The notes: a model not told the origin generated them from the letters alone. Positions 1 through 40,464 are shown, numbered from the stretch's first letter. The stretch is 64,000 nt of DNA from Anthoceros angustus (GCA_010909165.1 MU008169.1:1054001-1118000), one strand, 5' to 3'. Translations and numbers: made by a program.

Positions 1-1619
1 CCTCTGTCCCCTTTGGTATGCCATAGAATAGCCGTTAATTCTCATTATACCCTCTATATAACTTTGTCAATTCAGTCTCATTCCATGATAAAAATTCATC
101 CTTAGTGGACAAAATTTTTCTTCTTCTTCTAAAATAATTTATTTCTTTAAATAAATTTACAAACTGTATAAATATTTTAAATATATATAAATTTTTATAT
201 TTTAATAAATTTATATATTTAATAAATATTTGAAAATATACATGGAAGTCTGCATTGGGAATGAATAACTCCTAGGGCACCTAACAATTGGCGACCCGCC
301 GGAGCCCAAGGCAGGATGTTTAGAGCTGGCAGCCCCCGTAAGACCATGACGTTGGGGTATTGGTGGCATCCCATCCGAGCATTGCTCCGCACGCAGCTGA
401 GCCTTACTGAGGAGGACTTGAGAAGGACGATCGTGCTCGCCACGGTGAAGCAAGAGCTGCTCGAATGAAAACAACATGGTGTACTGCCGACCATCATTGC
501 ATTCGCATACCATGGCGCGAGGTAGGGTTCGGCAACCACCTGGTGTGGTCGGCAGCGTGTTAGGGTTTGCCATCCATGGCGGGCCATGGAAGAAAACTTT
601 ATGGCGGAAGGTAGGGTGGAAGGTGAAAACAATGTGTCACGGCTCTTTGTTTTGAAAGTTGCAAGGACAAAACATTTTCAACCGTACACCCTTTTCGAGG
701 AGGCGTGTGTGTCCCCTTTGGTGCTTGGTTGGTTAGGGCGCCAAAGCGGCCATGTGACCATGTCTTTGTAAAAAGATACCGTCTTTGGAATCTCTGGCAT
801 ATTCCTCAAGATCCCCACGGCTTGCATGGGTTTCATGAAAAAAAATGTCCCATCCTCATCCCCTTTGGTATGCCATAGAATAGCCGTTAATTCTCATTAT
901 ACCCTCTATATAACTTTGTCAATTCGGTCTCATTCCATGATAAAATTCATCCTTAGTGGACAAAATTTTCTTCTTCTTCTAAAATAATTTATTTCTTTAA
1001 TAAATTTACAAACTGTATAAATATTTTAAATATATATAAATTTTTATATTTTAATAAATTTATATATTTAATAAATATTTGAAAATATACATGGAAGTCT
1101 GCATTGGGAATGAATAACTCCTAGGGCACCTAACAATTGGCGACCCGCCGGAGCCCAAGGCAGGATGTTTAGAGCTGGCAGCCCCCGTAAGACCATGACG
1201 TTGGGGTATTGGTGGCATCCCATCCGAGCATTGCTCCGTCCGCACGCAGCTGAGCCTTACTGAGGAGGAGTTGCTGTCGTGATACAGGATGAAACGGCTC
1301 TTCCGTGTCGGGTGCTGCTGTAGATGCCTTTGCTGCAGAGCTGAACAGAGATGTTATTGGCGGAAGAGTTGGAGCGGAGGTTGCGGAAGCCGGTTACGGG
1401 CCTGGTCGTGTGGGAATGGGAATCCGCAAGCTGTACGTCAGGCCACGCCCATCGGTTCTGGTGCGCCTGGTTAGGGTGACAGAGGTGAGACCACAAGGCA
1501 CAGGAGGGTGGTTGGGGTGTCATGGTGTCGCAAATCGCGGGGGTCCGTCACAGTTGGCCACGTCCTCATTGAGGTTTTTGTTTAGGCTAACCAGGTTTTG
1601 TGCTGTGATTGCACAGGTC

Positions 1620-2360
1620 CCTCCCCATGGCGGAGGCGGGGAGGAGGAGGCGGGAGGCGGAAGGGTGGAGGGCACCTTCCCTCCCCATGGCGGCGGAGGA
1701 GGCGAAGGAAGGGTGGAGGCGGCGGAGGCGGCGGAGGCGGGAGGGCACCTTGCCCTCCCCCATGGCGGCGGAGGAGGAGGCGGGAGGCGGAGGCTCGGGA
1801 GGCGGGGAGGGCACGGTGGCCTCCCGTGGCGGCAACGCCCTTGAGGCCGTAGGCAGCGGGGAAAACATATTCCCTCCCCATGGCGGAGGCTCGGGAGGCG
1901 GCGAGCAGGAGGAGGAGGAGGAGGGCACCTTGCCCTCCCCATGGCGCGAGGTAGGGTTCGGCAACCACCTGGTGTGGTCGGCAGCGTGTTAGGGTTTGCC
2001 ATCCATGGCGGGCCATGGAAGAAAACTTTATGGCGGAAGGTAGGGTGGAAGGCGGCCGCGCAGGAGGAGGAGGGGAGGGCACCTTCCCTCCCATGGCGGC
2101 GGAGGCGGAGGCGGAGGAGGAGGAGGAGGCGGAGGCGGAGGCGGCGGAGGCGGGAGGGCACCTTCCCTCCCATGGCGGCGGAGGAGGAGGCGGAGGCGGG
2201 AGGAGGAGGAGGAGGGAGGGCACCTTGCCCTCCCATGGCGGCGGAGGCGGAGGCGGAGGCGGAGGCGGGGAGGGCACCTTCCCTCCCCGCCGACGGCATC
2301 GCCAGGGGGGCGCAGCAGGAGGAGGAGGAGGGAGGGCACCTTGCCCTCCCATGGCGCGCA
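1620..2360 (+). repeat. Array of about 10 palindromic GGGAGGGCACCTT(G)CCCTCCC units separated by variable GGC/GGA microsatellite
   Basis: Core units at ~1667, 1739, 1805, 1920, 2073, 2152, 2214, 2268, 2330, plus a degenerate one at ~1860. GGGAGGGCA-CCT-TGCCCTCCC is a 9-bp stem with a 3-nt loop, usually followed by CATGGCGG. Confidence 0.85.
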
Positions 2361-5300
2361 TCGCCCGGTGGAAGGTGAAAACAATGTGTCACGGCTCTTT
2401 GTTTTGAAAGTTGCAAGGACAAAACATTTTCAACCGTACACCCTTTTCGAGGAGGCGTGTGTGTCCCTTTGGTGCTTGGCATTTGGTTAGGGCGCCAAAG
2501 CGGCCATGTGACCATGTCTTTGTAAAAAGATACCGTCTTTGGAATCTCTGACATATTCCTCAAGATCCCCACGGCTTGCATGGGTTTCGCGAAAAAAAAT
2601 GTCCCATCCCTCTGTCCCTTTGGTATGCCATAGAATAATTCTCATTATACCCTCTATATAACTTTGTCAATTCGGTCTCATTCCATGATAAAATTCATCC
2701 TTAGTGGACAAAATTTTCTTCTTCTTCTAAAATAATTTATTTCTTTAATAAATTTACAAACTGTATAAATATTTTAAATATATATAAATTTTTATATTTT
2801 AATAAATTTATATATTTAATAAATATTTGAAAATATACATGGAAGTCTGCATTGGGAATGAATAACTCCTAGGGCACCTAACAATTGGCGACCCGCCGGA
2901 GCCCAAGGCAGGATGTTTAGAGCTGGCAGCCCCCGTAAGACCATGACGTTGGGGTATTGGTGGCATCCCATCCGAGCATTGCTCCGTCCGCACGCAGCTG
3001 AGCCTTACTGAGGAGGAGTTGCTGTCGTGATACAGGATGAAACGGCTCTTCCGTGTCGGGTGCTGCTGTAGATGCCTTTGCTGCAGAGCTGAACAGAGAT
3101 GTTATTGGCGGAAGAGTTGGAGCGGAGGTTGCGGAAGCCGGTTACGGGCCTGGTCGTGTGGGAATGGGAATCCGCAAGCTGTACGTCAGGCCACGCCCAT
3201 CGGTTCTGGTGCGCCTGGTTAGGGTGACAGAGGTGAGACCACAAGGCACAGGGAGGGTGGTTGGGGTGTCATGGTGTCGCAAATCGCGGGGGTCCGTCAC
3301 AGTTGGCCACGTCCTCATTGAGGTTTTTGTTTAGGCTAACCAGGTTTTGTGCTGTGATTGCACAGGTCCCTCCCGCAGGAAAGCCTATGGAACGCAATCC
3401 TGCTGTTGGGACGCAGCCAACGGCAGTGCCCTGGAATCAGCTAACACTTCAACAACAGCGGCAGGTATTGTTAAAACGGAGGCAACTGCAAATGCAACTG
3501 CAGCAGCATCGGCCCCATAGTGTTAATAGCAGATGGGGGCAGCAGTAGGGCGAACACTGGAGCTCTAGGTATTGAGAAGAAACCATCTGGCATGAACTGT
3601 GGCATCTCGACGCCGAGCGGAAGCAGATTAGGCGGAGGCTCGGGAGGCGGGCTGCGGAGGAGGAGGCGGAGGCGGAGGCGGAGGCTCGGGAGGCGGAGGC
3701 GGAGGCGATCCGCGGCACACCGGAGGAGGAGGAGGAGGAGGAGGCGGAGGCGGCGGAGCGGAGGTTGCGGAAGCCGGTTACGGGCCTGGTCGTGTGGGAA
3801 TGGGAATCCGCAAGCTGTACGTCAGGCCACGCCCATCGGTTCTGGTGCGCCTGGTTAGGGTGACAGAGGTGAGACCACAAGGCACAGGGAGGTGGTTGGG
3901 GTGTCATGGTGTCGCAAATCGCGGGGGTCCGTCACAGTTGGCCACGTCCTCATTGAGGTTTTTGTTTAGGCTAACCAGGTTTTGTGCTGTGATTGCACAG
4001 GTCCCTCCCCAGGAAAGCCTATGGAACGCAATCCTGCTGTTGGGACGCAGCCAACGGCAGTGCCCTGGAATCAGCTAACACTTCAACAACAGCGGCAGGT
4101 ATTGTTAAAACGGAGGCAACTGCAAATGCAACTGCAGCAGCATCGGCCCCATAGTGTTAATAGCAGATGGGGGCAGCAGTAGGGCGAACACTGGAGCTCT
4201 AGGTATTGAGAAGAAACCATCTGGCATGAACTGTGGCATCTCGTTTTCCCAGTTGGTGGCCTTAACTCTGCCTCATGTGCCTCAGGAGCAAGGCCAGCAG
4301 GTGGAAGCCCTGTTTCAGAGATTTAAAGTGAGCAGCTGGGGACTTCCTCTGCAGCATCTGGGTTCTGTGCTTGAATTCCTGAGTTGATCGGGGACGAGTA
4401 TGTGCACACACATTTTGGTCTGTGTGATTGGGACGCTTATGGCTTTCATTTGCTTACGATGTGCTTACGTCTCGGTGTTGTGTTGCTGTGTGCAGATAAA
4501 CGACATCACGCGGGAAGAATTTGTTGGAGGATGCCGAGTCATTGCGGGGATAACTTGTTCACGCAGGCAATCCAGCAGATGCACCTCAATGCCCGTCTTG
4601 CTGCTACCAATGTAATCAATAGTCAAATACCTGCTTGTGCAACTGCGTGCAGTACATTCTTTCCCCGTTGTGAGTGCTGATGGTTGTGTTGCCACAGGTG
4701 AAGGCAGAGCCGCAAACTCCACAATCTCAGCTATCTCCAGGACCTCTTTGTTTGCAGCAGCAGACGATCCAGAACAGACAAGCTGAGCTGCCGGGAGTCA
4801 GCTGCAACACCTGGGGTCACAAATTTTGGAAACTGTGAAAATGAGGTTGGTAAACAGTTCAAGCAGCAGTCGGGAACAGGACTTTTGTTGCTACACGTCT
4901 TCCTCTGACAGCTCCAGTGGTTAGCGGTAGTACCCAACAGCCTCCTTCCCTGGGGCAGAAGGCATCACCTCTGCAACCGCCTGGTAGCCAGTTTCTGCTA
5001 TCGCAGGGTTCAGCAGCTGCAGCGGACAAGCCATTGAGCAAATATCGGAGGTCGAAACTTTGGAAAGAACAGGAAAGGAGAGCGAGTGCGCCGACCAACT
5101 CCGCGAGGGCGAGCACAAGGGGAGGAAGCGCGATTACGAGGAATCGGACACGTGTCCGGCGGAGGCGGAGGCGGAGGCGGAGGCGGAGGCGGAGGAGGAG
5201 GAGGAGGAGGAGGAGGCGATGGCCGCCGCCGACGAGGCCGGGGGGTGGACAGATGGCGGATGCGCGATGCGCCGCGCCCGAGCCGCAGTCGAGCTCGCAT

Positions 5301-6801
5301 GGCGGTGGCGATGCAATGTCGCCATGCCCGAGCCGAGGTCGGCCATGGTGGCGGAGGCGATGATCGCCGCCGAGACCGAGGCCGACGGATGGCGCGATGG
5401 CGGGAATGAGGCGGGGATGCGGATGGGGCGACGCCATCCGCCCGCGGACAATGAGGCAACACTGGGCCGGTCGGCGGCGATCGCTGCAGGGAGTGGGATC
5501 GAGCGTGGCCGCTTGAGGAAGCCGATTCTGGAGGAATAACCGCCCATCGGTTCTGGTGCGCCTGGTTAGGGTGACAGAGGTGAGACCACAAGGCACAGGG
5601 AGGGTGGTTGGGGTGTCATGGTGTCGCAAATCGCGGGGGTCCGTCACAGTTGGCCACGTCCTCATTGAGGTTTTTGTTTAGGCTAACCAGGTTTTGTGCT
5701 GTGATTGCACAGGTCCCTCCCGCAGGAAAGCCTATGGAACGCAATCCTGCTGTTGGGACGCAGCCAACGGCAGTGCCCTGGAATCAGCTAACACTTCAAC
5801 AACAGCGGCAGGTATTGTTAAAACGGAGGCAACTGCAAATGCAACTGCAGCAGCATCGGCCCCATAGTGTTAATAGCAGATGGGGGCAGCAGTAGGGCGA
5901 ACACTGGAGCTCTAGGTATTGAGAAGAAACCATCTGGCATGAACTGTGGCATCTCGTTTTCCCAGTTGGTGGCCTTAACTCTGCCTCATGTGCCTCAGGA
6001 GCAAGGCCAGCAGGTGGAAGCCCTGTTTCAGAGATTTAAAGTGAGCAGCTGGGGACTTCCTCTGCAGCATCTGGGTTCTGTGCTTGAATTCCTGAGTTGA
6101 TCGGGGACGAGTATGTGCACACACATTTTGGTCTGTGTGATTGGGACGCTTATGGCTTTCATTTGCTTACGATGTGCTTACGTCTCGGTGTTGTGTTGCT
6201 GTGTGCAGATAAACGACATCACGCGGGAAGAATTTGTTGGAGGATGCCGAGTCATTGCGGGGATAACTTGTTCACGCAGGCAATCCAGCAGATGCACCTC
6301 AATGCCCGTCTTGCTGCTACCAATGTAATCAATAGTCAAATACCTGCTTGTGCAACTGCGTGCAGTACATTCTTTCCCCGTTGTGAGTGCTGATGGTTGT
6401 GTTGCCACAGGTGAAGGCAGAGCCGCAAACTCCACAATCTCAGCTATCTCCAGGACCTCTTTGTTTGCAGCAGCAGACGATCCAGAACAGACAAGCTGAG
6501 CTGCCGGGAGCGAGTCAGCTGCAACACCTGGGGTCACAAATTTTGGAAACTGTGAAAAATGAGGTTGGTAAACAGTTCAAGCAGCAGTCGGGAACAGGAC
6601 TTTTTGTTGCTACACGTCTTCCTCTGACAGCTCCAGTGGTTAGCGGTAGTACCCAACAGCCTCCTTCCCTGGGGCAGAAGGCATCACCTCTGCAACCGCC
6701 TAGTAGCCAGTTTCTGCTATCGCAGGGTTCAGCAGCTGCAGCGGACAAGCCATTGAGCAAATATCGGAGGTCGAAACTTTGGAAAGAACAGGAAAGGAGA
6801 G

Positions 6802-7845
6802 CGAGTGCGCCGACCAACTCCGCGAGGGCGAGCACAAGGGGAGGAAGCGCGATTACGAGGAATCGGACACGTGTCCGGCGGAAGCGCAGCGCCAAGGTGC
6901 CTCCGACGCCGAATGCCCGAACGCGCTCGCCGGAGGCGCGACGCGCCGAGCGAGAGAGCGATGAGGCAGCGGAATGCTCGACGCCGTGGAGGCCATGGAG
7001 GGCACAATTAAGGTTCTCCCAGATGATCAAGCGCATGGATGGAGGGAAGTAGGCGGCGCCATCCCTTGTGCTCGAGTTGCATCGGCGTTTTGGTTTTGCA
7101 TAGGGGCCGAGGCATGCGCCGAGGAAGGCCGCAGAGGGAGATAGGGTTTGATGCTACTGCAATTTTGCGATGTGTGCAGGGGACATCCTTTTTTGATGAA
7201 TGGAATGGCACCCTTATAATGTGAACGGCTCGTTGGAGGGACCGTAAACTTTGTTGGTGAGGTATCGACCGTGAATCGCTCGAACATGTCCTCGAATCGC
7301 CTTCCTCGCCGTTTGATCGCCATCATCTCTGCATTTGACGAAAAGCGCAATGGAGAAGGATGTCTGCTACTCCCGTAAAGCGGTGGGATCGGAGGAGTGG
7401 TAGAACAAATTTAAGCAGTGGATTCCCCAAATCCCACCACGGACAGAGTCTGCCACATGCACCCGATTTCTTGAGGCAACTGAAGGCGGCTTCTATGTTC
7501 CAGCAACATTTCAAACCCTCCACACGCCAGCGGCTGTGTCCGCGTCTTCTTAGCCAGGGACAATGGAATCGTGATTTTGTGAGGGAGCCTATCATGCTGG
7601 AAACATTGAGAAGGACGATCGTGCTCGCCACGGTAAGAAGCAAGAGCTCGCCGAATGAAAACAACATGGCCGCAGCCCATCATTGCATTCGCATACCATG
7701 GCGCGGCCGAGGTAGGGTTCGGCAACCACCGGTGTGGTCGGTAGCAGCGTGTTAGGGTTTGCCATCCATGGCGGGCCATGGAAGAAAACTTTATGGCGGA
7801 AGGTAGGGTGGAAGGTGAAAACAATGTGTCCACGGCTCTTTGTTT
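6802..7845 (+). other. Unidentified degenerate coding-like block (probably TE-derived), continuing as 640-1270
   Basis: Pieces recur at 421-860, 1940-2050, 2367-2620 and 9057-9190. Only short broken ORFs, and no intact donor in the window. Confidence 0.35.
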
Positions 7846-10800
7846 GCAGCAGCAGACGATCCAGAACAGACAAGCTGAGCTGCCGGGAGCGAGTCAGCTG
7901 CAACACCTGGGGTCACAAATTTTGGAAACTGTGAAAAATGAGGTTGGTAAACAGTTCAAGCAGCAGTCGGGAACAGGACTTTTTGTTGCTACACGTCTTC
8001 CTCTGACAGCTCCAGTGGTTAGCGGTAGTACCCAACAGCCTCCTTCCCTGGGGCAGAAGGCATCACCTCTGCAACCGCCTAGTAGCCAGTTTCTGCTATC
8101 GCAGGGTTCAGCAGCTGCAGCGGACAAGCCATTGAGCAAATATCGGAGGTCGAAACTTTGGAAAGAACAGGAAAGGAGAGCAGAAGAGGAGCAACTGCTG
8201 GGCAGCACAACTACCCAGACAATGGGAGTTACAGCAGTAGGAACAACTCAGCCAGTGCAGCAATCTCAAAATCAGTGACAGCAGATAGTTGCTGTCTCAA
8301 ATCACCAATCCCAAAAGAAGACACCTCCGCCGTCGACCAGCATCGAAACTTGTTTGCAAGCCAAAGTGGACCCCAGAATCCATCTAGACCACAGGTCTTA
8401 GACTCTCCTGCCTTGCAAAGAGTGGAGTCTTTGAGAGGCAACGAGCAAGAGCCTTTGTTATCCTCCCCGGTTATACTGCCCGTCTGACTGGCAGCTCTGC
8501 TGCTTCGACACCCATATCGTGTGCTTACTCACAAGAAACAACGTCATATGCAGAACGTGTCTTGCAACACTGTGGATTTCCCCCAAGCCAGGTCTGATGT
8601 TCTGTCTCTTAGCTCATGGTCCACGAATTGGATAGGCTGTAGTCAAATGTTTTCTCTCTTGGGGCCGGTAGATTTTTTGTTACTCACTGGTGCCGGTGTG
8701 GGATGTACAGGGAGTGCAACAGACTCCTGGTGTCCTTACAATTCGATCGGGTGGTTCTGGTCTGTCCATGCAAAAGAAATCAAATACCCCCATTCCAAGT
8801 GGCTTGACACCTACAAGTGCACAAGTACAAGGACAGGGACCTGTACAAAATTCAAGCATGTCTGAATTGTCAACCCTGGCTCAGTAGCAGGGAAGACTTC
8901 GATGACGAAGCCAGTGCTTGGTCCGAAGAAAGCTGCCGAAACTCCGCCACTATCTCAGCCCCCAAGGTTGGTGGTGTCCTATTATGTCAAATAGCTTGTT
9001 GTTCTTTGGATATTTATGTACGTGTACTGCGGATGAACCTGAAAGGTTTGGCATTTGTTGGTTAGGGCGCCAAAGCGGCCATGTGACCATGTGTCAGAAA
9101 AGATACCGCATCTGGAATCTACGGCATATTCCTCAAGATCCCCACGGCTTGCATGGGTTTCATGAAAAAAAATGTCCCATCCCTCTGTCCCCTTTGGTAT
9201 GCCATAGAATAGCCGTTAATTCTCATTATACCCTCTATATAACTTTGTCAATTCGGTCTCATTCCATGATAAAATTCATCCTTAGTGGACAAAATACTCG
9301 ACTCACCTCCAACAGCCCTGTCCGAGAGCTAACAGTGACAATTCGTGCGCCGGCCTCTGATGCTCTCAGCAGAGGCAGGATGCTTCTGGTTACAAACTGT
9401 ATAAATATTTTAAATATATATAAATTTTTATATTTTAAATAAATTTATATATTTAATAAATATTTGAAAATATACATGGAAGTCTGCATTGGGAATGAAT
9501 AACTCCTAGGGCACCTAACAATTGGCGACCCCGCCGGAGCCCAAGGCAGGATGTTTAGAGCTGGCAGCCCCCCGTAAGACCATGACGTTGGGGTATTGGT
9601 GGCATCCCATCCGAGCATTGCTCCGTCCGCACGCAGCTGAGCCTTACTGAGGAGGAGTTGCTGTCGTGATACAGGATGAAACGGCTCTTCCCGTGTCGGG
9701 TGCTGCTGTAGATGCCTTTGCTGCAGAGCTGAACAGAGATGTTATTGGCGGAAGAGTTGGAGCGGAGGTTGCGGAAGCCGGTTACGGGCCTGGTCGTGTG
9801 GGGAATGGGAATCCGCAAGCTGTACGTCAGGCCACGCCCATCGGTTCTGGTGCGCCTGGTTAGGGTGACAGAGGTGAGACCACAAGGCACAGGGAGGGTG
9901 GTTGGGGTGTCATGGTGTCGCAAATCGCGGGGGGGTCCGTCACAGTTGGCCACGTCCTCATTGAGGTTTTTTGTTTAGGCTAACCAGGTTTTGTGCTGTG
10001 ATTGCACAGGTCCCTCCCCGCAGGGAAAGCCTATGGAACGCAATCCTGCTGTTGGGACGCAGCCAACGGCAGTGCCCTGGAATCAGCTAACACTTCAACA
10101 ACAGCGGCAGGTATTGTTAAAACGGAGGCAACTGCAAATGCAACTGCAGCAGCATCGGCCCCATAGTGTTAATAGCAGATGGGGGGCAGCAGTAGGGGCG
10201 AACACTGGAGCTCTAGGTATTGAGAAGAAACCATCTGGCATGAACTGTGGCATCTCGTTTTCCCAGTTGGTGGCCTTAACTCTGCCTCATGTGCCTCAGG
10301 AGCAAGGCCAGCAGGTGGAAGCCCTGTTTCAGAGATGCGTAGTATCCCTCCACCAATTCGTCCAACACCTCCTCCGAAAGTTTGTCCACATTTTCCAGAG
10401 TCTGCCTTACAGAATCCTTGCCAAGAATCTGTAAAAAGGAGAGCGGTACAGGGTTAGCTTTGCAGTTTAAGCAAGAAAGAGTCCATGACAATCGACCTAG
10501 GCAAATGTAGAGGACAAAATACTCGACTCACCTCCAACAGCCCTGTCCGAGAGCTAACAGTGACAATTCGTGCGCCGGCCTCTGATGCTCTCAGCAGAGG
10601 CAGGATGCTTCTGGTTACAAACTTGACTCCGTAGAAGTTTGTGTTGAGGGTCGTTACCGCACCTTCAGGGTAGTAGAAGACGCCAGCATTGTTAACCTGA
10701 CAGAAGACGGAACCTTGAGAACGCCACTTGCAAACAGCACAAACTCATCCAACACGGCAATTTAGCATGATATGACGGCATCAACTAACCAGTATGTCGA

Positions 10801-13720
10801 CAGCACCGTACTTTCCTTCAACCAATCCGCAAGCTTCTGTGCCGACTCATCGCTTGCAACATCCAGCTGATGATACACAACCGGAAGGCCCTCGTCCACA
10901 AGCTTCTTCACAGCATCTCGCCCTCTCGTCTCGTCCCGTGAGGTCAACACTGTGGTTATCCCGTTCTGTGCTTGAATTCCTGAGTTGATCAGGGACGAGT
11001 ATGTGCACACACATTTTGGTCTGTGTGATTGGGACGCTTATGGCTTTCATTTGCTTACGATGTGCTTACGTCTCGGTGTTGTGTTGCTGTGTGCAGATAA
11101 ACGACATCACGCGGGAAGAATTTGTTGGAGGATGCCGAGTCATTGCGGGGATAACTTGTTCACGCAGGCAATCCAGCAGATGCACCTCAATGCCCGTCTT
11201 GCTGCTACCAATGTAATCAATAGTCAAATACCTGCTTGTGCAACTGCGTGCAGTACATTCTTTCCCCGTTGTGAGTGCTGATGGTTGTGTTGCCACAGGT
11301 GAAGGCAGAGCCGCAAACTCCACAATCTCAGCTATCTCCAGGACCTCTTTGTTTGCAGCAGCAGACGATCCAGAACAGACAAGCTGAGCTGCCGGGAGCG
11401 AGTCAGCTGCAACACCTGGGGTCACAAATTTTGGAAACTGTGAAAATGAGGTTGGTAAACAGTTCAAGCAGCAGTTTTCCAGACCGTTCCGGGAGGTGCC
11501 CCGTTGTTCCTCCAGGCCGGCTCGGTCATATCCGTGATAGTCCAGCCAGGGCAATAGGGGGTCACATACACTTTTTGCCCTGTAGGCCTGTCACCCAGCT
11601 GCTTAGCCAAGAGCCGAGAATACGCGTTCACAAGAGCCTTGGAAAAGTGGTAGTGAGTTTTGGCCCATGTGCCTTTCTCCGGCTCCTTCAGAGATGCGTA
11701 GTATCCCTCCACCAATTCGTCCAACACCTCCTCCGAAAGTTTGTCCACATTTTCCAGAGTCTGCCTTACAGAATCCTTGCCAAGAATCTGTAAAAAGGAG
11801 AGCGGTACAGGGTTAGCTTTGCAGTTTAAGCAAGAAAGAGTCCATGACAATCGACCTAGGCAAATGTAGAGGACAAAATACTCGACTCACCTCCAACAGC
11901 CTCCTTCCCTGGGGCAGAAGGCATCACCTCTGCAACCGCCTAGTAGCCAGTTTCTGCTATCGCAGGGTTCAGCAGCTGCAGCGGACAAGCCATTGAGCAA
12001 ATATCGGAGGTCGAAACTTTGGAAAGAACAGGAAAGGAGAGCAGAAGAGGAGCAACTGCTGGGCAGCACAACTACCCAGACAATGGGAGTTACAGCAGTA
12101 GGAACAACTCAGCCAGTGCAGCAATCTCAAAATCAGTGACAGCAGATAGTTGCTGTCTCAAATCACCAATCCCAAAAGAAGACACCTCCGCCGTCGACCA
12201 GCATCGAAACTTGTTTGCAAGCCAAAGTGGACCCCAGAATCCATCTAGACCACAGGTCTTAGACTCTCCTGCCTTGCAAAGAGTGGAGTCTTTGAGAGGC
12301 AACGAGCAAGAGCCTTTGTTATCCTCCCCGGTTATACTGCCCGTCTGACTGGCAGCTGATCCATCCCGGGAGGTTGGCGCCCACGACGACGAAGCTGGAG
12401 ACGACGTTGGAGTGGCCGGTGTTGAGCTTCAGCCCGGAGGACTGATTGTAGCACACCATGCCGTCCACCTGGACCCCGGACGAGGCCCAGTCCAGGTACA
12501 TGCACTGGACGCCCTGACGGCGTAGTTGCAGGAGAGGTAGTTCCCGGGTTGATCCAGTGCGAGGCGAAGTAGATGGCGGCCGCATCGGACGCCGTCGGCA
12601 GCCCGGGCGACGGTGATGTAGTTGTTGCTGATGGTGCTCAGCATGCAGTCGCCCACGTTGTGCTGCCCGGTCCTGCACTGCACCCCGCGAACGCCTGGTT
12701 CCGGAAGACGTTGTTGGAGACGGAGACGCCCACCGACATGCGGCGGAGGAACGCGCCCACCTGGGCTCCCGTGACGACGCTGTTGGTGAGGGAGACCGCG
12801 GCCGGGACGCGGCCCGGCCCGTCGCCCACGAACCCGAAGTCCACGGCGGCGACGTCGGACGGGAGGGTGGCGACGGCCAGGAGTCGAGGCCGATCTGGGT
12901 CGATTCCTGCACGTCGATGCGGCCCAGGATGTGGGTGGATTTCCCCAAGCCAGGTCTGATGTTCTGTCTCTTAGCTCATGGTCCACGAATTGGATAGGCT
13001 GTAGTCAAATGTTTTCTCTCTTGGGGCCGGTAGATTTTTTGTTACTCACTGGTGCCGGTGTGGGATGTACAGGGAGTGCAACAGACTCCTGGTGTCCTTA
13101 CAATTCGATCAGGTGGTTCTGGTCTGTCCATGCAAAAGAAATCAAATACCCCCATTCCAAGTGGCTTGACACCTACAAGTGCACAAGTACAAGGACAGGG
13201 ACCTGTACAAAATTCAAGCATGTCTGAATTGTCAACCCTGGCTCAGTAGCAGGGAAGACTTCGATGACGAAGCCAGTGCTTGGTCCGAAGAAAGCTGCCG
13301 AAACTCCGCCACTATCTCAGCCCCCAAGGTTGGTGGTGTCCTATTATGTCAAATAGCTTGTTGTTCTTTGGATATTTATGTACGTGTACTGCGGATGAAC
13401 CTGAAAGGTTTGGCATTTGGCTGGCAGTCTATGACTGTAGGTAGCCCTTTCTTGTGTTGGGCTGCAGTAAGAAGCAGAAAGTCGCGGGTGGTGATGCCGT
13501 TCAGAGCATTGATCAGTTCTACGATATCACGGTCGTGAGTGGCGTAAACCTCGGGGTTAGATGTTATTTAGATTGAGAAGAAGAAGAAGAATTTTATTTA
13601 AGTCCACTATTTTGTTGCGGGAAAGCCTAGGTGGTGTCCACAGGGAGCGTGTCTTCACAGGGTTCGCATACACAAAAACTAGTCTTGCATTTCATGGATG
13701 GACAAGAAGGTCCGAATGCA

Positions 13721-15623
13721 TTAGAAGTCCAGCAATTCGCGATCCATGTAAAATTTGCCCGATTGCAACTCACTTGCTGGCAACAAAGCGAGCCACACGC
13801 CATCCGCTCCTCCTTCAGCAGCAGTTTTCCAGACCGTTCCGGGAGGTTGGCGCCCACGACGACGAAGCTGGAGACGACGTTGGAGTGGCCGGTGTTGAGC
13901 TTCAGCCCGGAGGACTGATTGTAGCACACCATGCCGTCCACCTGGACCCCGGACGAGGCCCAGTCCAGGTACATGCACTGGACGCCCTGACGGCGTAGTT
14001 GCAGGAGAGGTAGTTCCCGGGTTGATCCAGTGCGAGGCGAAGTAGATGGCGGCCGCATCGGACGCCGTCGGCAGCCCGGGCGACGGTGATGTAGTTGTTG
14101 CTGATGGTGCTCAGCATGCAGTCGCCCACGTTGTGCTGCCCGGTCCTGCACTGCACCCCGCGAACGCCTGGTTCCGGAAGACGTTGTTGGAGACGGAGAC
14201 GCCCACCGACATGCGGCGGAGGAACGCGCCCACCTGGGCTCCCGTGACGACGCTGTTGGTGAGGGAGACCGCGGCCGGGACGCGGCCCGGCCCGTCGCCC
14301 ACGAACCCGAAGTCCACGGCGGCGACGTCGGACGGGAGGGTGGCGACGGCCAGGAGTCGAGGCCGATCTGGGTCGATTCCTGCACGTCGATGCGGCCCAG
14401 GATGTGGGTGGATTTCGCGATCTGGATGCCCCAGGAGCGGTAGATGAGGATGGCTGGGCAGAGCACCGACCCAGTACGCGTCGTGCGGGAACGACGACTC
14501 GCAGTCGCCGTCCGCCGCCCCGGCGCGTCCAGCGGGAGGTGCCCGTTGTTCCTCCAGGCCGGCTCGGTCATATCCGTGATAGTCCAGCCAGGGCAATAGG
14601 GGGTCACATACACTTTTTGCCCTGTAGGCCTGTCACCCAGCTGCTTAGCCAAGAGCCGAGAATACGCGTTCACAAGAGCCTTGGAAAAGTGGTAGTGAGT
14701 TTTGGCCCATGTGCCTTTCTCCGGCTCCTTCAGAGATGCGTAGTATCCCTCCACCAATTCGTCCAACACCTCCTCCGAAAGTTTGTCCACATTTTCCAGA
14801 GTCTGCCTTACAGAATCCTTGCCAAGAATCTGTAAAAGGAGAGCGGTACAGGGTTAGCTTGCAGTTTAAGCAGAAAGAGTCCATGACAATCGACCTAGGC
14901 AAATGTAGAGGACAAAATACTCGACTCACCTCCAACAGCCCTGTCCGAGAGCTAACAGTGACAATTCGTGCGCCGGCCTCTGATGCTCTCAGCAGAGGCA
15001 GGATGCTTCTGGTTACAAACTTGACTCCGTAGAAGTTTGTGTTGAGGGTCGTTACCGCACCTTCAGGGTAGTAGAAGACGCCAGCATTGTTAACCTGACA
15101 GAAGACGGAACCTTGAGAACGCCACTTGCAAACAGCACAAACTCATCCAACACGGCAATTTAGCATGATATGACGGCATCAACTAACCAGTATGTCGACA
15201 GCACCGTACTTTCCCTTCAACCAATCCGCAAGCTTCTGTGCCGACTCATCGCTTGCAACATCCAGCTGATGATACACAACCGGAAGGCCCTCGTCCACAA
15301 GCTTCTTCACAGCATCTCGCCCTCTCGTCTCGTCCCGTGAGGTCAACACTGTGGTTATCCCGTTCTGTGCAAGCTGCTTGGCTATCTCGTAGCCTATGCC
15401 TTTGTTGCCCCCGGTTACAACAGCAACGGTATCCTTGGACCACCATCTGCTTGAACCACAACAGGGGAGTGGCTGGGTAAGTATACTGGCGCGCTCGACA
15501 AAGCACAGACCCGAGCACATTACAGATGTTCCATGGCAGTCCAGACCTCGTCTTCTCACTCGTCATTGTAAAACCTTGGAGCTGCGTTCACATTCTGATA
15601 CTCGCAACTGCGAATGGCACCAT
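13721..15623 (-). CDS. Carbonyl reductase / neomenthol dehydrogenase-like SDR paralog, interrupted in this sequence by a ~690-bp piece of the beta-helix gene
   Basis: ATG at 15623. WWSKDTVAVVTGGNKGIG Rossmann motif, VNNAG, YHFSK. Same 4-exon layout as 40465-41668. Insert at 13848-14532. Confidence 0.8.
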
Positions 15624-16615
15624 ATTTATATCCCCTGCTGGAACCTTTCAGTCCCTTCCCGCTGAGGTTCCCTGTTTCACACGCGGCAAAAAACACCTCA
15701 AGCAGGAATCTTGTGAAAGGAGTGTCCCGGCAAACCGGAACTGTACAAGTTCCATGTTCCAATATACCAGCTCACTAATAGGTATATATTCAAAGACATC
15801 AAATTGAAGTCCATGAAGGGGAGGTACATGTTTAGTCTGCCAATTCAAATTATGTTTCTAGATCTAAAGTAAAATAATAAAGCCCATCAAAGAAAATTTT
15901 ACCTGTTTTATTCAATAAAAAAAATTTCAATCTCAGCTTTCTTTTTAAGATATCACTTTGAATCATATGAAAACTATAACATGTAAGTTACATGTTATGA
16001 GGTTCACACAGTTTTGATGATTGTATTTGTAAGTTGGATATTCTGCGTGCTTCGTAAAAGAGATTACATAAAACGTGTAAAAGTGATTACGTAAAGAACA
16101 CATGTGACATAGAAGTCTCCTAGCTCATATAGTGACTTATTTACATAGCACTTTTTAGCTAGCTTCATTATGCACATAGGGATTGACATATACATATTCG
16201 TTCCTTGCGTGTCCTCTTGATCGGCTTTCGACCCCTTTATCATTGTTCTCTAACAAACCCCTAACGCTCTTTTAGGCCCGGTTTGCTAATGAGCCTTATC
16301 ATTATTCTATAGAGCTCATAACATCCCTTCCCACATCAGAGGGCTGTACCTAATTAAAAGGTCTTTGATTTGCTAATGAGGATTATCAATTCATTTTGTG
16401 CACTTTGATGGGTTGGGTACCTTACACAGGTCTAGAAGTATCACAAATAACCATATCCAATTCCACAATCACTTTATCTTCCTTAGCGACTCAATAAAAT
16501 TCCTTTTTGGTGTAAAATTTGGAGATAAGTCATAATAAGTAGTCATACAACAACAACAACTTTATTGTATATGTCATACCACCTGACTAAGTACCCGGTA
16601 TCCTGATCTGTCCAT

Positions 16616-16651
16616 TTTGACAGGCTTAAACACATGATTAAGCCTGTCAAA
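16616..16651. other. Perfect 14-bp hairpin
   Basis: TTTGACAGGCTTAA-acacatga-TTAAGCCTGTCAAA. Confidence 0.8.
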
Positions 16652-17123
16652 TCATCCGATTTTGGAATCAACAACCCTAGCCCTTAGCCAGGACCACGGT
16701 GGTAGTGGTGCATAGTGATGCTACTCTGACGGGTTCCATACACGGTGGAACATGTTATTGTCTATAAAGATGTCTTTTATTCCCTCGTAGCCTTCATCAA
16801 AACCATGAGGCCTTTGTGGAGTATGTCGATTGCCTCAAGTCTAAGCCCAAAAGTCGGTACCAAAATGAGAAGAAGCGGACAAACTCCCACTAGACCTTGC
16901 AAGCTACACACGACAAACTCCCACTAGACCTTGCAAGCTACACACGTAAGATAAAAGCCACTCATAGTTGGATCACTTTGTCTCCACCTTGTTGTTATTG
17001 GAAGAAGAAAAGAATCCTAGGCCTGGGACAAAGGAAGTCTGGTCCTTTCAAGCTAGCCCTAAAATTCACTGGTCTGCCCTCATGGAAACATCGAACTAGC
17101 CAGGGAAACCAGGGAATATGTAC

Positions 17124-18892
17124 TCATCGGCTAGGCTGGGAGTAGTCGTCCGCAGCAGCGTTGGTGAACCAACGGCCAACCAGGACGCCGGGCTTGACGT
17201 TGTAGCGGGCAAGGTAATCCGCATCCGCCACCTTCTGGACCCCGTTCTGCGACTTGGGGCAGGAACGGAATCCCGGGTAAAGGTTGTAAACGGGCGAGGA
17301 AGGCGCCACCCCGAAGTCGAGCCCGTTAAAATCCGCAAACTGCATAACCTTACTGGTAAGCGGGGGAGCCGTGTAGTTAAGGCTGTTAAGCGCCGGCACC
17401 ACGCTCACATTCGCGCAGCTGAGATAAGTAGGCGTGTTCCTGGGCTTGCGCGGATCCACGATCACCAGCTCCAGCCGGTTCCCGGTGGGAATCCCGCTGC
17501 AGCCGCCGGTCACCTCGGTGGGCGCGCTCCCGGGCGGGTTGCAGCCGACGCCCCCGAAGCGGCTCAGCTTGCAGAAGTCCGTGAGCCAGGGGTACGCCTT
17601 GCGGAACGCGGGCGAGCTGTAGGACGCGATCCGCTGCGCGTCCCAGAACTTCCCGATCTCGGCCCGGCAGTTGTTGAGCTCGAAGTTCTGGCAGCTGATC
17701 CATCCCGGGAGGTTGGCGCCCACGACGACGAAGCTGGAGACGACGTTGGAGTGGCCGGTGTTGAGCTTCAGCCCGGAGGACTGATTGTAGCACACCATGC
17801 CGTCCACCTGGACCCCGGACGAGGCCCAGTCCAGGTACATGCACTGGACGCCCCCGACGGCGTAGTTGCAGGAGAGGTAGTTCCCGGGGTTGATCCAGTG
17901 CGAGGCGAAGTAGATGGCGGCCGCATCGGACGCCGTCGGGTAGCCCGGGGCGACGGTGATGTAGTTGTTGCTGATGGTGCTCAGCATGCAGTCGCCCACG
18001 TTGTGCTGCCCGGTCCCGCACTGCACCCCCGCGAACGCCTGGTTCCGGAAGACGTTGTTGGAGACGGAGACGCCCACCGACATGCGGCGGAGGAACGCGC
18101 CCACCTGGGCTCCCGTGACGACGCTGTTGGTGAGGGAGACCGCGGCCGGGACGCGGCCCGGCCCGTCGCCCACGAACCCGAAGTCCACGGCGGCGACGTC
18201 GGACGGGAGGGTGGCGACGGCCAGGGAGTCGAGGCCGATCTGGGTCGATTCCTGCACGTCGATGCGGCCCAGGATGTGGGTGGATTTCGCGATCTGGATG
18301 CCCCAGGAGCGGTAGATGAGGATGGCTGGGCAGAGCACCGACCCCGAGTACGCGTCGTGCGGGAACGACGACTCGCAGTCGCCGTCCGCCGCCCCCGGCG
18401 CGTCCAGCGGGAGGTGGAAGTTGAGGTTCTGGATGAGGACGTTGGAGGCGTTCCAGAGGACCAGGACCGGGCCGGCCGACGCGTTGTTGTCCAAGAAGAT
18501 CGTGGGCGACCGGTCGCCCGCGCTCGTGAGGATGGTGCATGAGAACTCCTCTGACAGGGTTATGGTGGACGGGGTTTTCAGGTCCGTTGCCACTGCCAAA
18601 GTTACCGTTGTGTTGGACGGGTACAGGGTCCGCTTGTACAGGTCCGCCGGCGTGTTCACCACGATTCGTTTTGCGTTCACGTATGTGGAGCACGGCCCGC
18701 CTGCAGAAATGACCTCTTCCATGTTAGCATCATGAAGTGAAGAATGCATGCAATGGCATGAAGAGGAAGGTTGGAGGAGATGGAGAGGATACCTTTTGCA
18801 GATACCATGGTGGGTTGGTGGCACAGGGTGGCCAGCGCTGAGATGCACAGCACCAGGCCGGAGTGGAAGAGAGCTGCATGGCTTCTAGCCAT
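17124..18892 (-). CDS. Secreted right-handed parallel beta-helix (pectin-lyase-fold-like) protein, about 558 aa, 2 exons (18892-18793, 18700-17124)
   Basis: Signal-peptide-like exon MARSHAALFHSGLVLCISALATL. A phase-1 GT..AG intron (18792-18701) splices in frame into the 574-aa ORF. Asn-ladder repeats (NVLIQNLNF, VSVSNNVF, STISNNYI) and a DAAAIY...GN...YLD..SSG motif. Confidence 0.8.
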
Positions 18893-21549: not shown

Positions 21550-23283
21550 TCATCTGCTCATGTTGTTTACAGTTGGATTGGTCCGTGTCTTTCTCAAGTT
21601 GTGTTCTTGGACAAGCTGCTCGGCGAACCAGTCCAAACGTTCCGAGTTGCTTTGAGAAAGCGTCCTTTTACCACCGAAGGGGTTGTGCTCCATCCCCATT
21701 TGCCCTAACAAATCATCTGCTAGCTTCATCAGTCTGTTCACATTGCTTCTGCTGGGGTCGTCCATCTCAGTCAGACAACGGTCTGGGAGACCAGAGACCT
21801 GCTACACACGACACGTTGTGGTTAAAAATCAAGTGATGTAAATGTGCTTCCGACAGACCGATATTGGCGGTGATGGTGGGCGATGCGGTTTGGCATCGTT
21901 TGCTGTTCCAAACCCCAACAAAGAAAACAGATAAGGGATTTCTGTTACCTGTATACGAACGTAGTTCTCACGATGCGCTCCAAAGGATATACAAATTGTG
22001 TGGTCCACAATGTCGGAGATCCCATCGAGCACAATTTTCACAATAGGTTTTGCCCACTGGAATGCTCCCCACTGGCGAACCTTCTTATACTTGTAGGTGC
22101 GATCAAACTGGCCCGTGCCTATTGACAGCACAAGCAGATCATGAACTCCTCGGACAGAAGGAAACTCACGCTTATTGTGCAACACATGGGTAATTGCCGC
22201 TGCAGTGGGATTGTTCATCACCAGCCCCCCATCCACCGCTGTGCACGTTGTTTTGCCGTCTATGGATGTCAAGTGCGCTGGCTTGAAGAAGGCAGGCACA
22301 GCAGAAGTTGCCCGGCAAACCTCCCACAGCCGAAAATCCCAAGTCTCTGCACCCAGCGCGTCAGCTCTTGAGAACAGAAAGGTTCCCGCGCTACAGAGAT
22401 CATAACAAGGAATAAGAACTGGTTTGATGGTATCCCTCAACGTCAGAGCACGACCCTCCCTCACCAGATGCTCTTTCAATACCTCCTCCAAATACTTGGA
22501 AGAGTACCTGGGAGTCAGAATTCCCCGCAAACTCGCCCATGGACGCTGCAGCTTCGGTATCTTGAAAATCTGTCGCCCCTTCTCAGCAATAAGTTTCCAA
22601 GTCTCCTCTCCCCGGAACAGGGGCCGACCCTTCCCATCGTCCGTGAAAAGCATAGTGGCAAGTATCCCGCCCACACTCGTCCCTGCTGCCACGTCGAAAT
22701 AATCCACAATTCGAGCCTCGGGATCCCCACTCTTCTTCTTCAGAGCTTCCTCCAGGTATGCCAAGACTCTTCCCGCAATGATACCTCTCATGCCGCCTCC
22801 ATCGATGGACAGGATACAGACTTTCCCCCTCTCCACGTCCGCTCCACCATAGGAGACAACCTCAGGCTTCTCGGGTTCTGAGGACATTCTCGCATCCCCT
22901 GCTACCTCCACATCCAGTTGAGGAAGCTCCGCGGAAAAGTGCGGACGCTGCTCCTCATTTTCTATCAAGTCAGTCGGAACCGCAGTTGACCGAAACGGGG
23001 AAGCAGGACCTCGGGTCGGAGAAGGTGCGCTACTGCCTGACACACGATTTCTGATCGGGCTCCTCCCAGGAGAAGGTGTGACATAACTTCTGGAATGTCT
23101 GGACCTAGCAGGACGATTGTTGGAGGCTGACAAAGTACCAATCTTGGACGCAGTGCCGGCGGTTTTCCTCGGGGACTCAACAGTCATGAATGGAGGAGGT
23201 TCACCGGCCACAGATCGATTTCCATAAACACCTTCGGTGTCATCATCCAGCTCCGGAAACAGGCTAAGTAACCTCGGCATCAT
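21550..23283 (-). CDS. Patatin-related phospholipase, pPLAIII-like, 2 exons (23283-21949, 21798-21550)
   Basis: ILSIDGGGMRG, DVAAGTSVGG, DGGLVMNNPTAAAITHVLHNKREFP, LLVLSIGTG. Second exon VSGLPDRCLTEMDDPS... Confidence 0.92.
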
Positions 23284-25222: not shown

Positions 25223-25600
25223 TTGGTCCGGCATTGCCGCCGGACCAAGCCGGAGGCCTATCGACCCTGGATTGATCAAACTTCGTGGAGATGTTCCAGA
25301 CTTGCAGGACCTTCCCGTGTGGGGTGCTGTCTTTTTGGGAGAGGTGAACAATTCATTTGCGAAAGTGTGGCAGTGGAGGCTGCGACACCTATGGTAATGT
25401 TAAAACGGAAGCGACAGCAACAGCATCAGCCCCATGGCATTGCAGATGGGGGGCTAGCAGTAGGGGTAAACACTCTGGGTATTGAGAAGAAACCTTTTGG
25501 CGTGAGCTATGGCATCTCGTTTCCTCAGTTGATGCCCTTACTTCTGCCTCATTTGCCTCAGGAACAAGGCCAGCAGCTGGAAGCCGTCTTTCAGAGATCG
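25223..25600 (+). pseudogene. Truncated TAF4B N-terminal/RST derivative
   Basis: LGIEKKPFGVSYGISFPQLMPLLLPHLPQEQGQQLEAVFQR matches TAF4B exon 3. The start codon equivalent is degraded (ATCGACCCT). Confidence 0.8.
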
Positions 25601-26420
25601 TCCGTCAGCAGCAGAACTGCCAGTCATACGGGCAGTGTAACCACCTGGGGAGGGCTCATTGCCTTTCAAAGACTCCACTCTATCCAATGCAGGTGAGTCT
25701 GAACTCTATCAGCCTTTAGTTCCTGGCGAATTTGGTTGGCATGAAGTTGCTGCTTTCGTTGATTGGTAGCAGCAGGACGTGCCTTGAGTTGCATCTGCAG
25801 AATTATCTGCACTAACATGTCATCTCCGGCAACATCCTCGAAAAAAATCTTCCTGCCTGACGTTGTTCATTTTAAATCTCTCGAAAGAGGACTTCCAGCT
25901 GCTGGCCTCGCTCCTTAGGCAATTGAGGCAGAAATGAGGGCATGAACTAAGAAACCGAGATGCCACTGCTCATGCCAGATGGTTTCTTCTCTATACCCAG
26001 AGCTCCGGCGTTTGCCCCTATTGCTGGCCCTCCATCTGCAGTACCATGGGGCCGATGCTGCTGCTGCAATGCCCTGGGCTATTGTTGGAGTGTTGGCTGA
26101 TTCCACTGCAATGCCCTGCACTGTCTCCCGACAGCAGAATTGGCCTCCACAGGTTTCTCCTGCGAGGAAGAGTCTTTGTCACCGCCCTGCGCAGCCTCCG
26201 ATGCCACGCATTCACAAATGAAAATGTTCACCTCTCCAAAAACGACAGCTCCCCGTTACCAGAAGAGCAATTTCATCCTACATATCGGGAACATCTTCAC
26301 GAAGTTTACACCTTCAGAATCCATAAGCCTCCGGTGGCCAGTGTGCCCCTCACGCTCGCAACCGCGCCACACCATATTCTTCGAGAATTATCCTGCCGCT
26401 GCTGCTGCTGCTCGTTACAC
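25601..26420 (-). pseudogene. Intron-lacking truncated TAF4B RST derivative
   Basis: Reverse strand reads ATGGATTCTG...GAGAGATTTAAAATGAACAACGTCAGGCAGGAAGAT (exon 3/4 joined) ...QMQLKARPAATN, then a piece matching TAF4B 37123-37235. Contains stops and frameshifts. Confidence 0.8.
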
Positions 26421-35227: not shown

Positions 35228-35827
35228 ATGGATCCTGCACTTCTCAATTTTCTTGAAGATGACGAGGTACTTTTCTAGGGATTTGGCCGCAGGCAAGGGC
35301 TCTCAGGCTCTGCGGAGATTGTGCTCAAAGGCATGGCCGTACTGAGGAGGAGTTGTTGTGGTGATACAGGATGAAACGGCTCTTCCCGTGTCGGGTGCTG
35401 CTGTAGATGCCTTTGCTGCAGAGCTGAACAGAGATGTTATTGGCGGAAGAGTGGGAGCGAAGGTTGCGGAAGCCGGTTACGGGCCTGGTCGTGTGGGGAA
35501 TGGGAATCCGCAAGCTGTACCTCAGGCCATGCCCATCGCTTCTGGTGCGCCTGGCAAGGGTGACAAAGGTGAGACCAGAAGGCGCAGGGGGGGTGGTTGG
35601 GGTGTCATGGTGTCGCAAATCGAGGGGGCATCCGTCACAGCTGGCCACGTCCTCATTGATGTTTTTGTTTAGGCTAACCAGGTTTTGTGCTGTGATTGCA
35701 CAGGTCCCTCCCCGCATGGAAAGCCTGTGGAAGGCAATCCTGCTGTTGGGACACAGCCAACGGCAGTGCCCTGGAATCAGCTAACACTTCAACAACAGCG
35801 GCAGGTAATGTTACAACGGAGGCAACT

Positions 35828-35858
<31 letters not shown>

Positions 35859-39743: not shown

Positions 39744-40464
39744 TTCGGCCGCGTATTTCTGGGCCTCATCAACACCGGTTGTGTAGGCGCCATTTATCTG
39801 AACCTAGATATGTATGTCAGCGTGCTTAAAGACCGGGCAGGGAGGCCCATCCCTGTGTGTTCACCACATCCGCGCCAAGGGCCCTCCGCCTGCTTTTTAA
39901 GCACGAAGATATAAACATTCTCTGTGCCAATGCTTTTGCTTCGCTGGCTAAGCCTCGAAGTAGCATCTTGCCTCTTGCTGTGTTAGCCCCTCACAAGGGA
40001 TTCTTGGAAGTCGGTCGTGATGGATATCTAAGAGTGAGCACACAATTGGTCTTATGCTGCATGTTGCCTCTTGGTGAAGAGGTATGAGTCTCTTTTAAAC
40101 GGTGTATCTATCCCTAACTGTCATGCTGGCTAACGAGGGAGATGTATGCATATTTCAATACTAGCCCCCCACGAGTTCTACCGAGGAAGTACGTACCGCT
40201 CCCAAGATGTTTTAATTTAAAGAAAAGGGCTGATTACCATGGAAGCTGAAGATGCAGCATATCCCACGCTACTTGTCATCACTGTTGGCCAACGCTCTTT
40301 GCGGGGAGATGGAGACACGTCGCGGAACAAAGAGTTCCGTTTTTTGCGGTTCAAGTTTGTTGGGGAAGCTTCTTGCCAACTTTCCTCCAGAGTTGTTTGT
40401 TTCTTTCCGCGTGTCAGCTCGAACCTGCGTCAGAAGGGACCGAAAGAATGAACTGGATATAAAT

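Follow-up and report, generated by a model that had tools for sequence, protein, structure and literature searches.

The stretch of DNA analysed here (the window, 64,000 nucleotides) begins with a same-strand mosaic at 1-15633, in which near-identical pieces are repeated and interleaved. This was found by self-BLAST and by a parse against a non-redundant reference locus of 7694 nt, which was the basis of the parse and of the shared-word counts given below. The pieces come from a truncated copy of a TAF4-like gene and the upstream block belonging to it, from an SDR-like copy and from a 574-aa ORF that has no name. A preliminary description had placed a patchwork at 7836-14541; it is present there, and its true span is wider. 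The features are as follows, with the evidence for each in brackets.

1-15633, plus strand: the whole mosaic (self-BLAST and reference parse).
1-7835, plus strand: left part, in which the block and the 5' half of the TAF4-like copy are partly traversed five times (self-BLAST, parse).
7836-9057, plus strand: extra pass through the TAF4-like copy, covering its middle and 3' part (reference 1744-2959; reference parse).
9287-9398, plus strand: detour 0, where the upstream block is interrupted by 103 nt of the SDR-like copy (= 14910-15021; word contexts and parse).
9390-15633, plus strand: backbone pass, TAF4-like and then SDR-like sequence in order, interrupted by four detours (reference parse).
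10328-10971, plus strand: detour 1, SDR-like piece (= 14729-15370, with 0 mismatches and 4 gaps; alignment, parse).
11467-11901, plus strand: detour 2, SDR-like piece (= 13817-13847 plus 14542-14940; word contexts, parse).
12349-12943, plus strand: detour 3, piece of the 574-aa ORF (= 17688-18288; alignment, parse).
13839-14541, plus strand: detour 4, piece of the 574-aa ORF (= 17705-18416; alignment, parse).
17124-18848, minus strand: the intact 574-aa ORF, source of detours 3 and 4 (ORF; Pfam, PDB and protein searches).
35336-39743, plus strand: diverged TAF4-like paralog, 93-95% nucleotide identity, with RST and TAF4 domain matches (self-BLAST, Pfam).
41768-40455, minus strand (opposite to the SDR-like copy): diverged SDR-like paralog, 89-91% nucleotide identity, with adh_short matches (self-BLAST, Pfam).

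The mosaic collapses to about 4.5 kb of non-redundant sequence, made up of the block, the N-half of the TAF4-like copy and the SDR-like copy, plus the pieces borrowed from the ORF. The TAF4-like and SDR-like labels had been given before, and the Pfam matches of the paralogs (RST, TAF4, adh_short) bear them out. The TAF4-like paralog was used as the outgroup giving the true order of the pieces, and the SDR paralog as the outgroup for the SDR-like pieces. In reference coordinates the backbone runs through 388-1322, 1362-1870, 1934-2398, 2474-3387 and 3380-4479, and it is colinear with the paralogs at 35336-37952 (plus) and 41768-40455 (minus) by self-BLAST. The donors of the mosaic pieces are all local (within 19 kb), and repeats of at least 97% identity were found by self-BLAST only within 1-18416. 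Every piece aligned on the plus strand in the reference parse, which is its donor orientation, as the preliminary description had it. The remainder of the window from 16 to 64 kb is orderly, with paralogs colinear over 2.6 kb (self-BLAST).

In the left part, the five passes lie at 1-420, 615-1625, 2367-3609, 3743-5083 and 5541-6802. Between them lie stretches, either G+C-rich and of low complexity or unique, that have no source in the window, and a Pfam search with ORFs in the G+C-rich spacers gave no match. The stretches 5084-5540 and 6803-7605 have no second copy within the window. The extra pass that follows comes from the block and goes back to it: the way in is the 10-nt word 7836-7845, and the way out is a word of about 10 nt, 9048-9057.

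Each of the five detours leaves at one shared 9-mer and returns at another. Detour 0 exits at 9287-9295 and returns at 9390-9398, about 40 nt downstream of the exit. Detour 1 is bounded by 10328-10336 and 10963-10971 and replaces 39 nt of TAF4-like backbone. The bounding words of detour 2 are 11467-11475 and 11893-11901 (63 nt of backbone replaced) and those of detour 3 are 12349-12357 and 12935-12943 (75 nt replaced). In detour 4, the SDR-like copy is left at 13839-13847 and re-entered at 14533-14541, which is the very next SDR-like 9-mer. Re-entry is 1-76 nt downstream of the exit in five of five cases. Since 252 such detours are feasible and 5 were used, a deterministic signature in which all feasible detours are taken was ruled out.

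The copies differ from each other mainly by indels. In a copy-to-copy alignment of 13.7 kb, 39 mismatches and 84 gap openings were counted, 69 of the gaps being of homopolymer type; between the true paralogs in the same window, mismatches are two to three times as frequent as gaps. The SDR-like detours carry zero substitutions relative to their sources. Detour 3 differs from 17688-18288 by 3 mismatches and 6 gaps and is 6 nt shorter. Detours 3 and 4 are mutually 100% identical over 578 nt and have 6 deletions in common relative to the intact ORF.

Thirteen junctions could be checked, and 11 of these lie on exactly 9 nt common to both donors, two on 10 nt and none on a shorter word. All 12 words listed in the preliminary description were recovered at their positions. 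Its claim of ten exact 9-bp junctions holds, as both donor contexts of each word are present elsewhere in the window with a mismatch at either end. Among these contexts are the diverged paralogs (35336-37952, plus; 41768-40455, minus) as well as the ORF at 17124-18848. Two further junctions had been described as about 10 bp long. The first, at 7836-7845, is clean. The second, at 9048-9057, is ambiguous, since the closest block copy in the window has no more than 91-94% identity and differs by a small indel directly behind the word. The thirteenth junction, again of exactly 9 nt, is in the left part of the mosaic on the plus strand (615-623 = 2044-2052 = 2367-2375). The junctions are without inserted bases, as had been stated, because each introduces a single new 11-mer and leaves the set of 10-mers unchanged. 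This was seen relative to the non-redundant locus at eight of eight junctions in 9058-13419, where the remaining absent 10-mers are all at indel or mismatch sites.

The 9-nt limit is a hard floor. In the 7694-nt locus, maximal words shared on the same strand number 1263 at 7 nt, 363 at 8 nt and 147 at lengths of at least 9 nt, and none of the 7-mers and 8-mers is used as a junction although together they are 11 times commoner than the longer words. If any word of at least 7 nt were usable, the probability that 13 of 13 junctions have at least 9 nt would be about 1e-14 by arithmetic from the word counts. Among the available words of at least 9 nt, 71% are 9-mers, 19% are 10-mers and 10% are of at least 11 nt; the corresponding shares of the junctions used are 85%, 15% and 0%. 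Above the floor, junction lengths follow availability, and longer, more stable pairing is not favoured. Words with a G+C content from 2/9 to 7/9 are all 9 nt long; the floor does not shift between AT-rich and GC-rich words and is one of length, not of pairing energy. After homopolymer compression, three words taken by inspection were 5-6 long. A floor in compressed bases was ruled out: the compressed lengths vary, and therefore the floor is counted in plain bases. As for orientation, inverted shared words of at least 9 nt number about 115 against 147 direct ones, and 0 of 13 switches are inverted (p about 5e-4 for 13 same-strand switches, again by arithmetic from the word counts).

Several of these properties bear on a real and very recent rearrangement, in which a polymerase would have switched among nearby templates in the manner of MMBIR/FoSTeS or of Pol-theta templated insertions, copying 100-700 nt and returning near the exit. 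Such mechanisms resemble the mosaic in their local templates (here all donors are within 19 kb), in the short word shared at each switch, in serial switching and in the replacement of a short stretch, as in the five detours with their nearby return. In MMBIR/FoSTeS and Pol-theta joins, microhomology is of variable length, mostly 0-6 nt, with a preference for longer or more G+C-rich stretches, and both inversions and untemplated bases occur often. Here, however, the words are fixed at 9-10 nt in spite of the abundance of 7-8-nt words, longer words are not enriched, G+C content has no influence, no switch is inverted, no untemplated bases are present and the SDR-like detours carry no substitutions. 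We therefore regard template switching as very unlikely.

The mosaic would be better explained as an artefact of assembly or consensus, that is, a walk through a graph of 9-mer nodes and not a rearrangement in the plant; judged from the sequence, we give this reading a probability of about 0.85. The hard 9-nt floor, the availability-shaped lengths, the 10-mer closure, the single strand and the indel-dominated copy differences were all observed directly. The artefact is preferred because the floor, the availability-shaped lengths, the independence from G+C content and the 10-mer closure are what a walk over 9-mer nodes produces. A single-stranded walk with 10-mer edges and 9-mer nodes had already been put forward as the leading explanation, and it also fits the local donors, the use of one strand and the mainly indel differences. 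We infer from this that the walk was made by software and not by a polymerase.

The true locus would probably consist of one or a few copies of the upstream block together with the truncated TAF4-like and SDR-like copies, and it would lie about 1.5 kb from the gene for the 574-aa protein. In spelling the contig, one step may have turned the reads of this repeat-rich stretch into a graph of 9-letter words and followed mostly the true sequence. At some words present by chance in two places, the walk would have taken the wrong exit, picked up a few hundred bases from an adjacent gene and rejoined at a second shared word. Over the left part it would have looped several times through the same sequence. 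Spurious copies of this kind could not be properly polished with short reads, and homopolymer indels would be left in them. Two of the observations may be read in another way as well. A guided consensus could return 1-76 nt past the exit, and a polymerase going back to its template could do the same. Differences consisting of indels alone would likewise be expected if the copies were genuine duplicates, identical and very recent, which are beyond polishing with short reads.

The copy differences are relevant also to a mixed case, in which block and TAF4-fragment units would truly be arrayed in tandem in the left part (1 to about 9 kb) and software errors would account for some junctions only. 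Real substitutions exist between certain block copies: 9058-9295 against 2483-2714 (91% identity, 11 mismatches) and 418-652 against 7606-7845 (92%). The two single-copy stretches of the left part also point in this direction. However, the majority of copies in 1-7.8 kb match the backbone at 98-100% identity and differ from it by indels alone, and the left-part junctions 615-623 and 7836-7845 follow the same 9-10-nt rule as the others. This mixed case is considered very unlikely.

Another suggestion of the preliminary description was a k-mer-preserving shuffle. A synthetic sequence, obtained by a shuffle preserving 10-mer counts or as a 9th-order Markov sample of a real window, would indeed change donor at shared 9-mers alone and stay on one strand, as here. 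However, about one position in five of the 64 kb has a 9-mer recurring by chance, and scrambling into pieces of about 10 nt would be expected window-wide, whereas the 16-64 kb part is orderly and its paralogs remain colinear. Besides, the contexts at the junction nodes are unbalanced between entries and exits: node 10328-10336 has three TAF4-type entries against two TAF4-type exits, which is impossible for a count-preserving shuffle of an unrearranged sequence. A shuffle preserving k-lets was ruled out on both grounds, and the chance that the sequence is synthetic is practically negligible.

Returning to the artefact, known k-mer-graph assembly or de Bruijn-type consensus (for example, early wtdbg) behaves in much the same way. 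Switches occur only at exact words at least as long as the node, joins create no new k-mers, one strand is kept if the reads are pre-oriented, loops and detours arise through locally repeated words, and spurious copies bear the indel noise of raw long reads. The walk seen here is mostly correct and always returns near its exit, and in this it differs from a free walk and appears guided. If the sequence is from the published Anthoceros angustus assembly, a candidate program is the k-mer-graph consensus module of wtdbg-1.2.8. That assembly (289 scaffolds, 119.3 Mb, 49.6% G+C) is based on Nanopore reads, and the programs used for it were wtdbg-1.2.8, Pilon and SSPACE (PMC7027989). The k-mer size of the wtdbg consensus program is settable (-k), and the values given for wtdbg-cns in other papers are 13 and 15, not 9 or 10 (PMC7016290, PMC6701489). 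The node of 9 nt implied here is far shorter than these documented settings, which speaks against the artefact. The wtdbg parameters are missing from the supplements to the A. angustus paper, and a literature search for reported misassembly in A. angustus yielded nothing useful. The NextDenovo corrector was rejected as the responsible step; it uses a 3-mer score chain and 8-mers at the flanks and has no 9-mer graph.

Two biological systems that build genes from fragments were also compared. Mutator-like elements generate a 9-bp target-site duplication, a length that the junction words recall, and capture by Pack-MULEs or Helitrons likewise gives a patchwork of several host-gene fragments. The 9-bp repeat of a Pack-MULE arises by insertion and flanks an element with terminal inverted repeats. 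In contrast to Pack-MULEs, the 9-mers here are no product of insertion and pre-exist in both donors, including the 89-95% identical paralogs 20-27 kb away, and in contrast to both element types the mosaic fragments are at least 97% identical to their neighbours. Self-BLAST detected no large inverted repeats in the mosaic, save one short AT-rich repeat in the block copies. Ciliate scrambled genes are similar in that pieces are joined at short words common to both partners. In ciliates, pointer length ranges between 2 and about 20 nt, inverted pieces are numerous, and the system depends on a germline genome distinct from the somatic one. Here, unlike in ciliates, the word length is fixed, no piece is inverted and the host is a land plant. 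The alternative raised in the preliminary description, a fixed-length pointer rearrangement, has nothing in its favour. That the joins are real, made by a hornwort process of template switching or recombination for which at least 9 matching bases of any composition are needed and which gives no inversions, is highly improbable; if true, it would be a length-measuring 'pointer' mechanism reshuffling neighbouring genes at many loci.

The pattern most likely has no biological importance and matters for quality control. It flags stretches of this assembly in which gene order, copy number and open reading frames are untrustworthy. Wherever a gene fusion, cassette swap, tandem amplification or 'scrambled' array is found in this genome, the first check should be for junctions of at least 9 nt, and the 11-mer/10-mer closure test can be a fast screen for such artefact junctions.

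Some observations concern the open reading frames themselves. Pfam and PDB searches with the 574-aa ORF gave no match, and a word-index protein search gave four relatives only, at 34-48% identity. For a patatin ORF, an exact look-up found no match, and the best matches of a protein search were from liverworts, at 80% identity or less. No hornwort relative of either ORF was found in the protein database searched. The Logan contig L001 is a distant relative and was left out of the comparison. A 387-aa frame at 13627-14790 on the minus strand spans two junctions and would resemble a fusion protein.

Self-comparison of the window placed all of the near-identical repeats (97–100%) within positions 1–18416, and only older, diverged repeats of 78–95% identity were found beyond 18416. 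A non-redundant reference of 7694 nt was tiled from 2367–3609, 4244–5083, 8182–9057, 13420–13847 and 14542–18848. Its components are as follows.

Upstream block
N-terminal half of a TAF4-like gene copy
SDR-like gene copy
Spacer
17124–18848, minus strand: intact ORF of 574 aa

Against this reference, the entire stretch from 1 to 15633, called the mosaic here, parses into same-strand pieces. Its left part (1–9057) goes through portions of the block and of the TAF4-like copy in five to six additional passes. Because position 1 is already inside a copy, the mosaic probably extends leftward beyond the window. The left-part passes are divided by G+C-rich low-complexity stretches with short purine-rich G/A repeats (1627–2360, 3610–3742 and 5157–5540). 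No source of the G+C-rich or unique stretches between the passes was found within the window, and the long minus-strand ORFs across the three G+C-rich stretches had no Pfam match.

All of the 12 junction words listed in the preliminary description were found in place. The 9-nt words are common to both donors as described there, and both parental contexts of each were recovered elsewhere in the window, diverged paralogs included. At these words the mosaic joins the left context of one parent to the right context of the other, and the bases immediately outside the words mismatch. A further 9-nt junction was identified at 615–623, the same word standing at 2044–2052 and 2367–2375. One of the two words described as about 10 nt stands at 10 nt. 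The other (9048–9057) is doubtful, as the window's block donor for it reaches only 91–94% identity and differs by a small indel just past the word. In total, 11 of 13 junctions are exactly 9 nt and two are 10 nt, in a tally that covers the junctions outside the three G+C-rich stretches.

Counted by length, the maximal words shared on the same strand within the reference number 1263 (7 nt), 363 (8 nt), 105 (9 nt), 28 (10 nt) and 14 (above 10 nt). If any word of at least 7 nt were usable, the probability that 13 of 13 junctions reach at least 9 nt is ∼1e-14 by our own arithmetic. The junction lengths track availability (85% 9-mers and 15% 10-mers observed versus 71%, 19% and 10% longer available), and there is no preference for longer pairing. 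Junction words with G+C contents of 2/9 and 7/9 are both 9 nt long; the threshold is a letter count, not a pairing energy. All 13 switches are direct, though about 115 inverted words of at least 9 nt were available versus 147 direct ones (p ∼5e-4). Between 9058 and 13419, the junctions add zero 10-mers absent from the reference and exactly one absent 11-mer each, and the remaining absent 10-mers are all located at indel or mismatch sites. Therefore, the mosaic is a valid walk through a graph with 9-mer nodes. The 9-nt floor, the closure of 10-mers and the single strand support the leading reading of the preliminary description, an artefact of a k-mer graph walk. With a probability of roughly 0.85, we consider the mosaic an artefact of assembly or consensus calling, with a simple locus spanning a few kb underneath, rather than a real feature.

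The k-mer-preserving shuffle that had been proposed beside it did not hold. A count-preserving shuffle or Markov sample would have scrambled the whole window, yet 16–64 kb is unscrambled, and the node at 10328–10336 has three entry contexts versus two exit contexts. Capture by a transposon that duplicates a 9-bp target was also ruled out because every word pre-exists in both donors, old paralogs included. Elsewhere in the window there are ordinary diverged tandem repeats at 30891–33959 (units of about 0.6–1.0 kb, 86–88% identity), minisatellites with units of about 36 and 47 nt at 49200–50730, and a duplicated stretch of some 660 nt (91%) at 62552–63865. The 9-nt junction pattern is absent from these three regions.

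The true order of the pieces can be read from two diverged paralogs, which were used as outgroups.

35336–39743, plus strand: TAF4-like gene, 93–95% identical, with Pfam RST and TAF4 matches
40455–41768, strand opposite to the SDR-like copy: SDR gene, 89–91% identical, with adh_short matches

The first of them is an apparently complete TAF4-type gene by its RST and TAF4 domain matches. Two older TAF4-like fragments of about 80–88% nucleotide identity were observed at 25400–26400 and 46580–48330 (minus strand). The local TAF4-derived sequence family is older than the mosaic.

Between 9390 and 15633, the walk follows what is taken as the backbone, first the TAF4-like sequence and then the SDR-like one, in the correct order with four detours; a fifth precedes them.

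Two detours through the SDR-like copy: 642 and 434 nt, replacing 39 and 63 nt of backbone
Two detours through the 574-aa ORF: 595 and 703 nt, replacing 75 and 0 nt of backbone
9287–9398: fifth detour, 103 nt

Exit and re-entry of each of the four backbone detours are 9-mers, and in the last one the 9-mer of re-entry into the SDR-like copy directly follows and overlaps the 9-mer of exit. All of the detours re-enter 1–76 nt downstream of their exit, though 252 such detours were possible. Such short returns are the single observation that speaks for real serial template switching, but a consensus guided by the backbone would equally return 1–76 nt downstream, and real switching is judged very improbable. 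An open frame of 387 aa (13627–14790, minus strand) spans two junctions, running from the SDR-like copy through a 574-aa-ORF piece and back into the SDR-like copy. It is most likely spurious, and a gene caller would call it a fusion protein. The biological interest of the mosaic is low; it is a caution for any fusion, cassette swap or scrambled array claimed in this genome.

Copy-to-copy alignment over 13.7 kb gave 39 mismatches against 84 gap openings, and 69 of the latter were of homopolymer type. In the self-comparison, the true paralogs in the window showed the reversed mismatch/gap ratio. The two 574-aa-ORF detours are identical to one another across 578 nt, and the same six bases are missing from both when compared with the intact ORF. 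The copy differences resemble an unpolished long-read consensus. The indel pattern alone would fit spurious copies as well as genuine duplicates that are identical and very recent, since neither can be polished with short reads. Some block copies are separated by true substitutions, and thus the left part could, with low probability, be a real tandem array overlaid by errors of the software.

In wtdbg 1.x, the consensus program works on a graph of the de Bruijn type. Its k-mer size is a parameter, set in other studies to -k 13 and -k 15 (PMC7016290, PMC6701489). The published A. angustus assembly (289 scaffolds, 119.3 Mb, 49.6% G+C) was produced from Nanopore reads with wtdbg-1.2.8, Pilon polishing and SSPACE scaffolding, and NextDenovo v2.0 is among the software (PMC7027989). 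For that genome project, the same publication lists BioProject PRJNA543716 and a k-mer peak at 132. A documented 9-mer step was sought for the candidate programs and was not found; the NextDenovo corrector is without one (PMC11046930).

The intact 574-aa ORF gave no Pfam or PDB match. A search of 5.8 billion proteins found only four relatives (34–48% identity), of which three come from Logan contigs and the fourth from a EukProt transcriptome. The ORF seems to represent a rare protein family that has no name. A single ORF at 21829–23283 (minus strand) is a patatin-like phospholipase (Pfam PF01734); in a database without hornwort proteins, its best relatives are from the liverworts Riccia and Marchantia at 73–80% identity.
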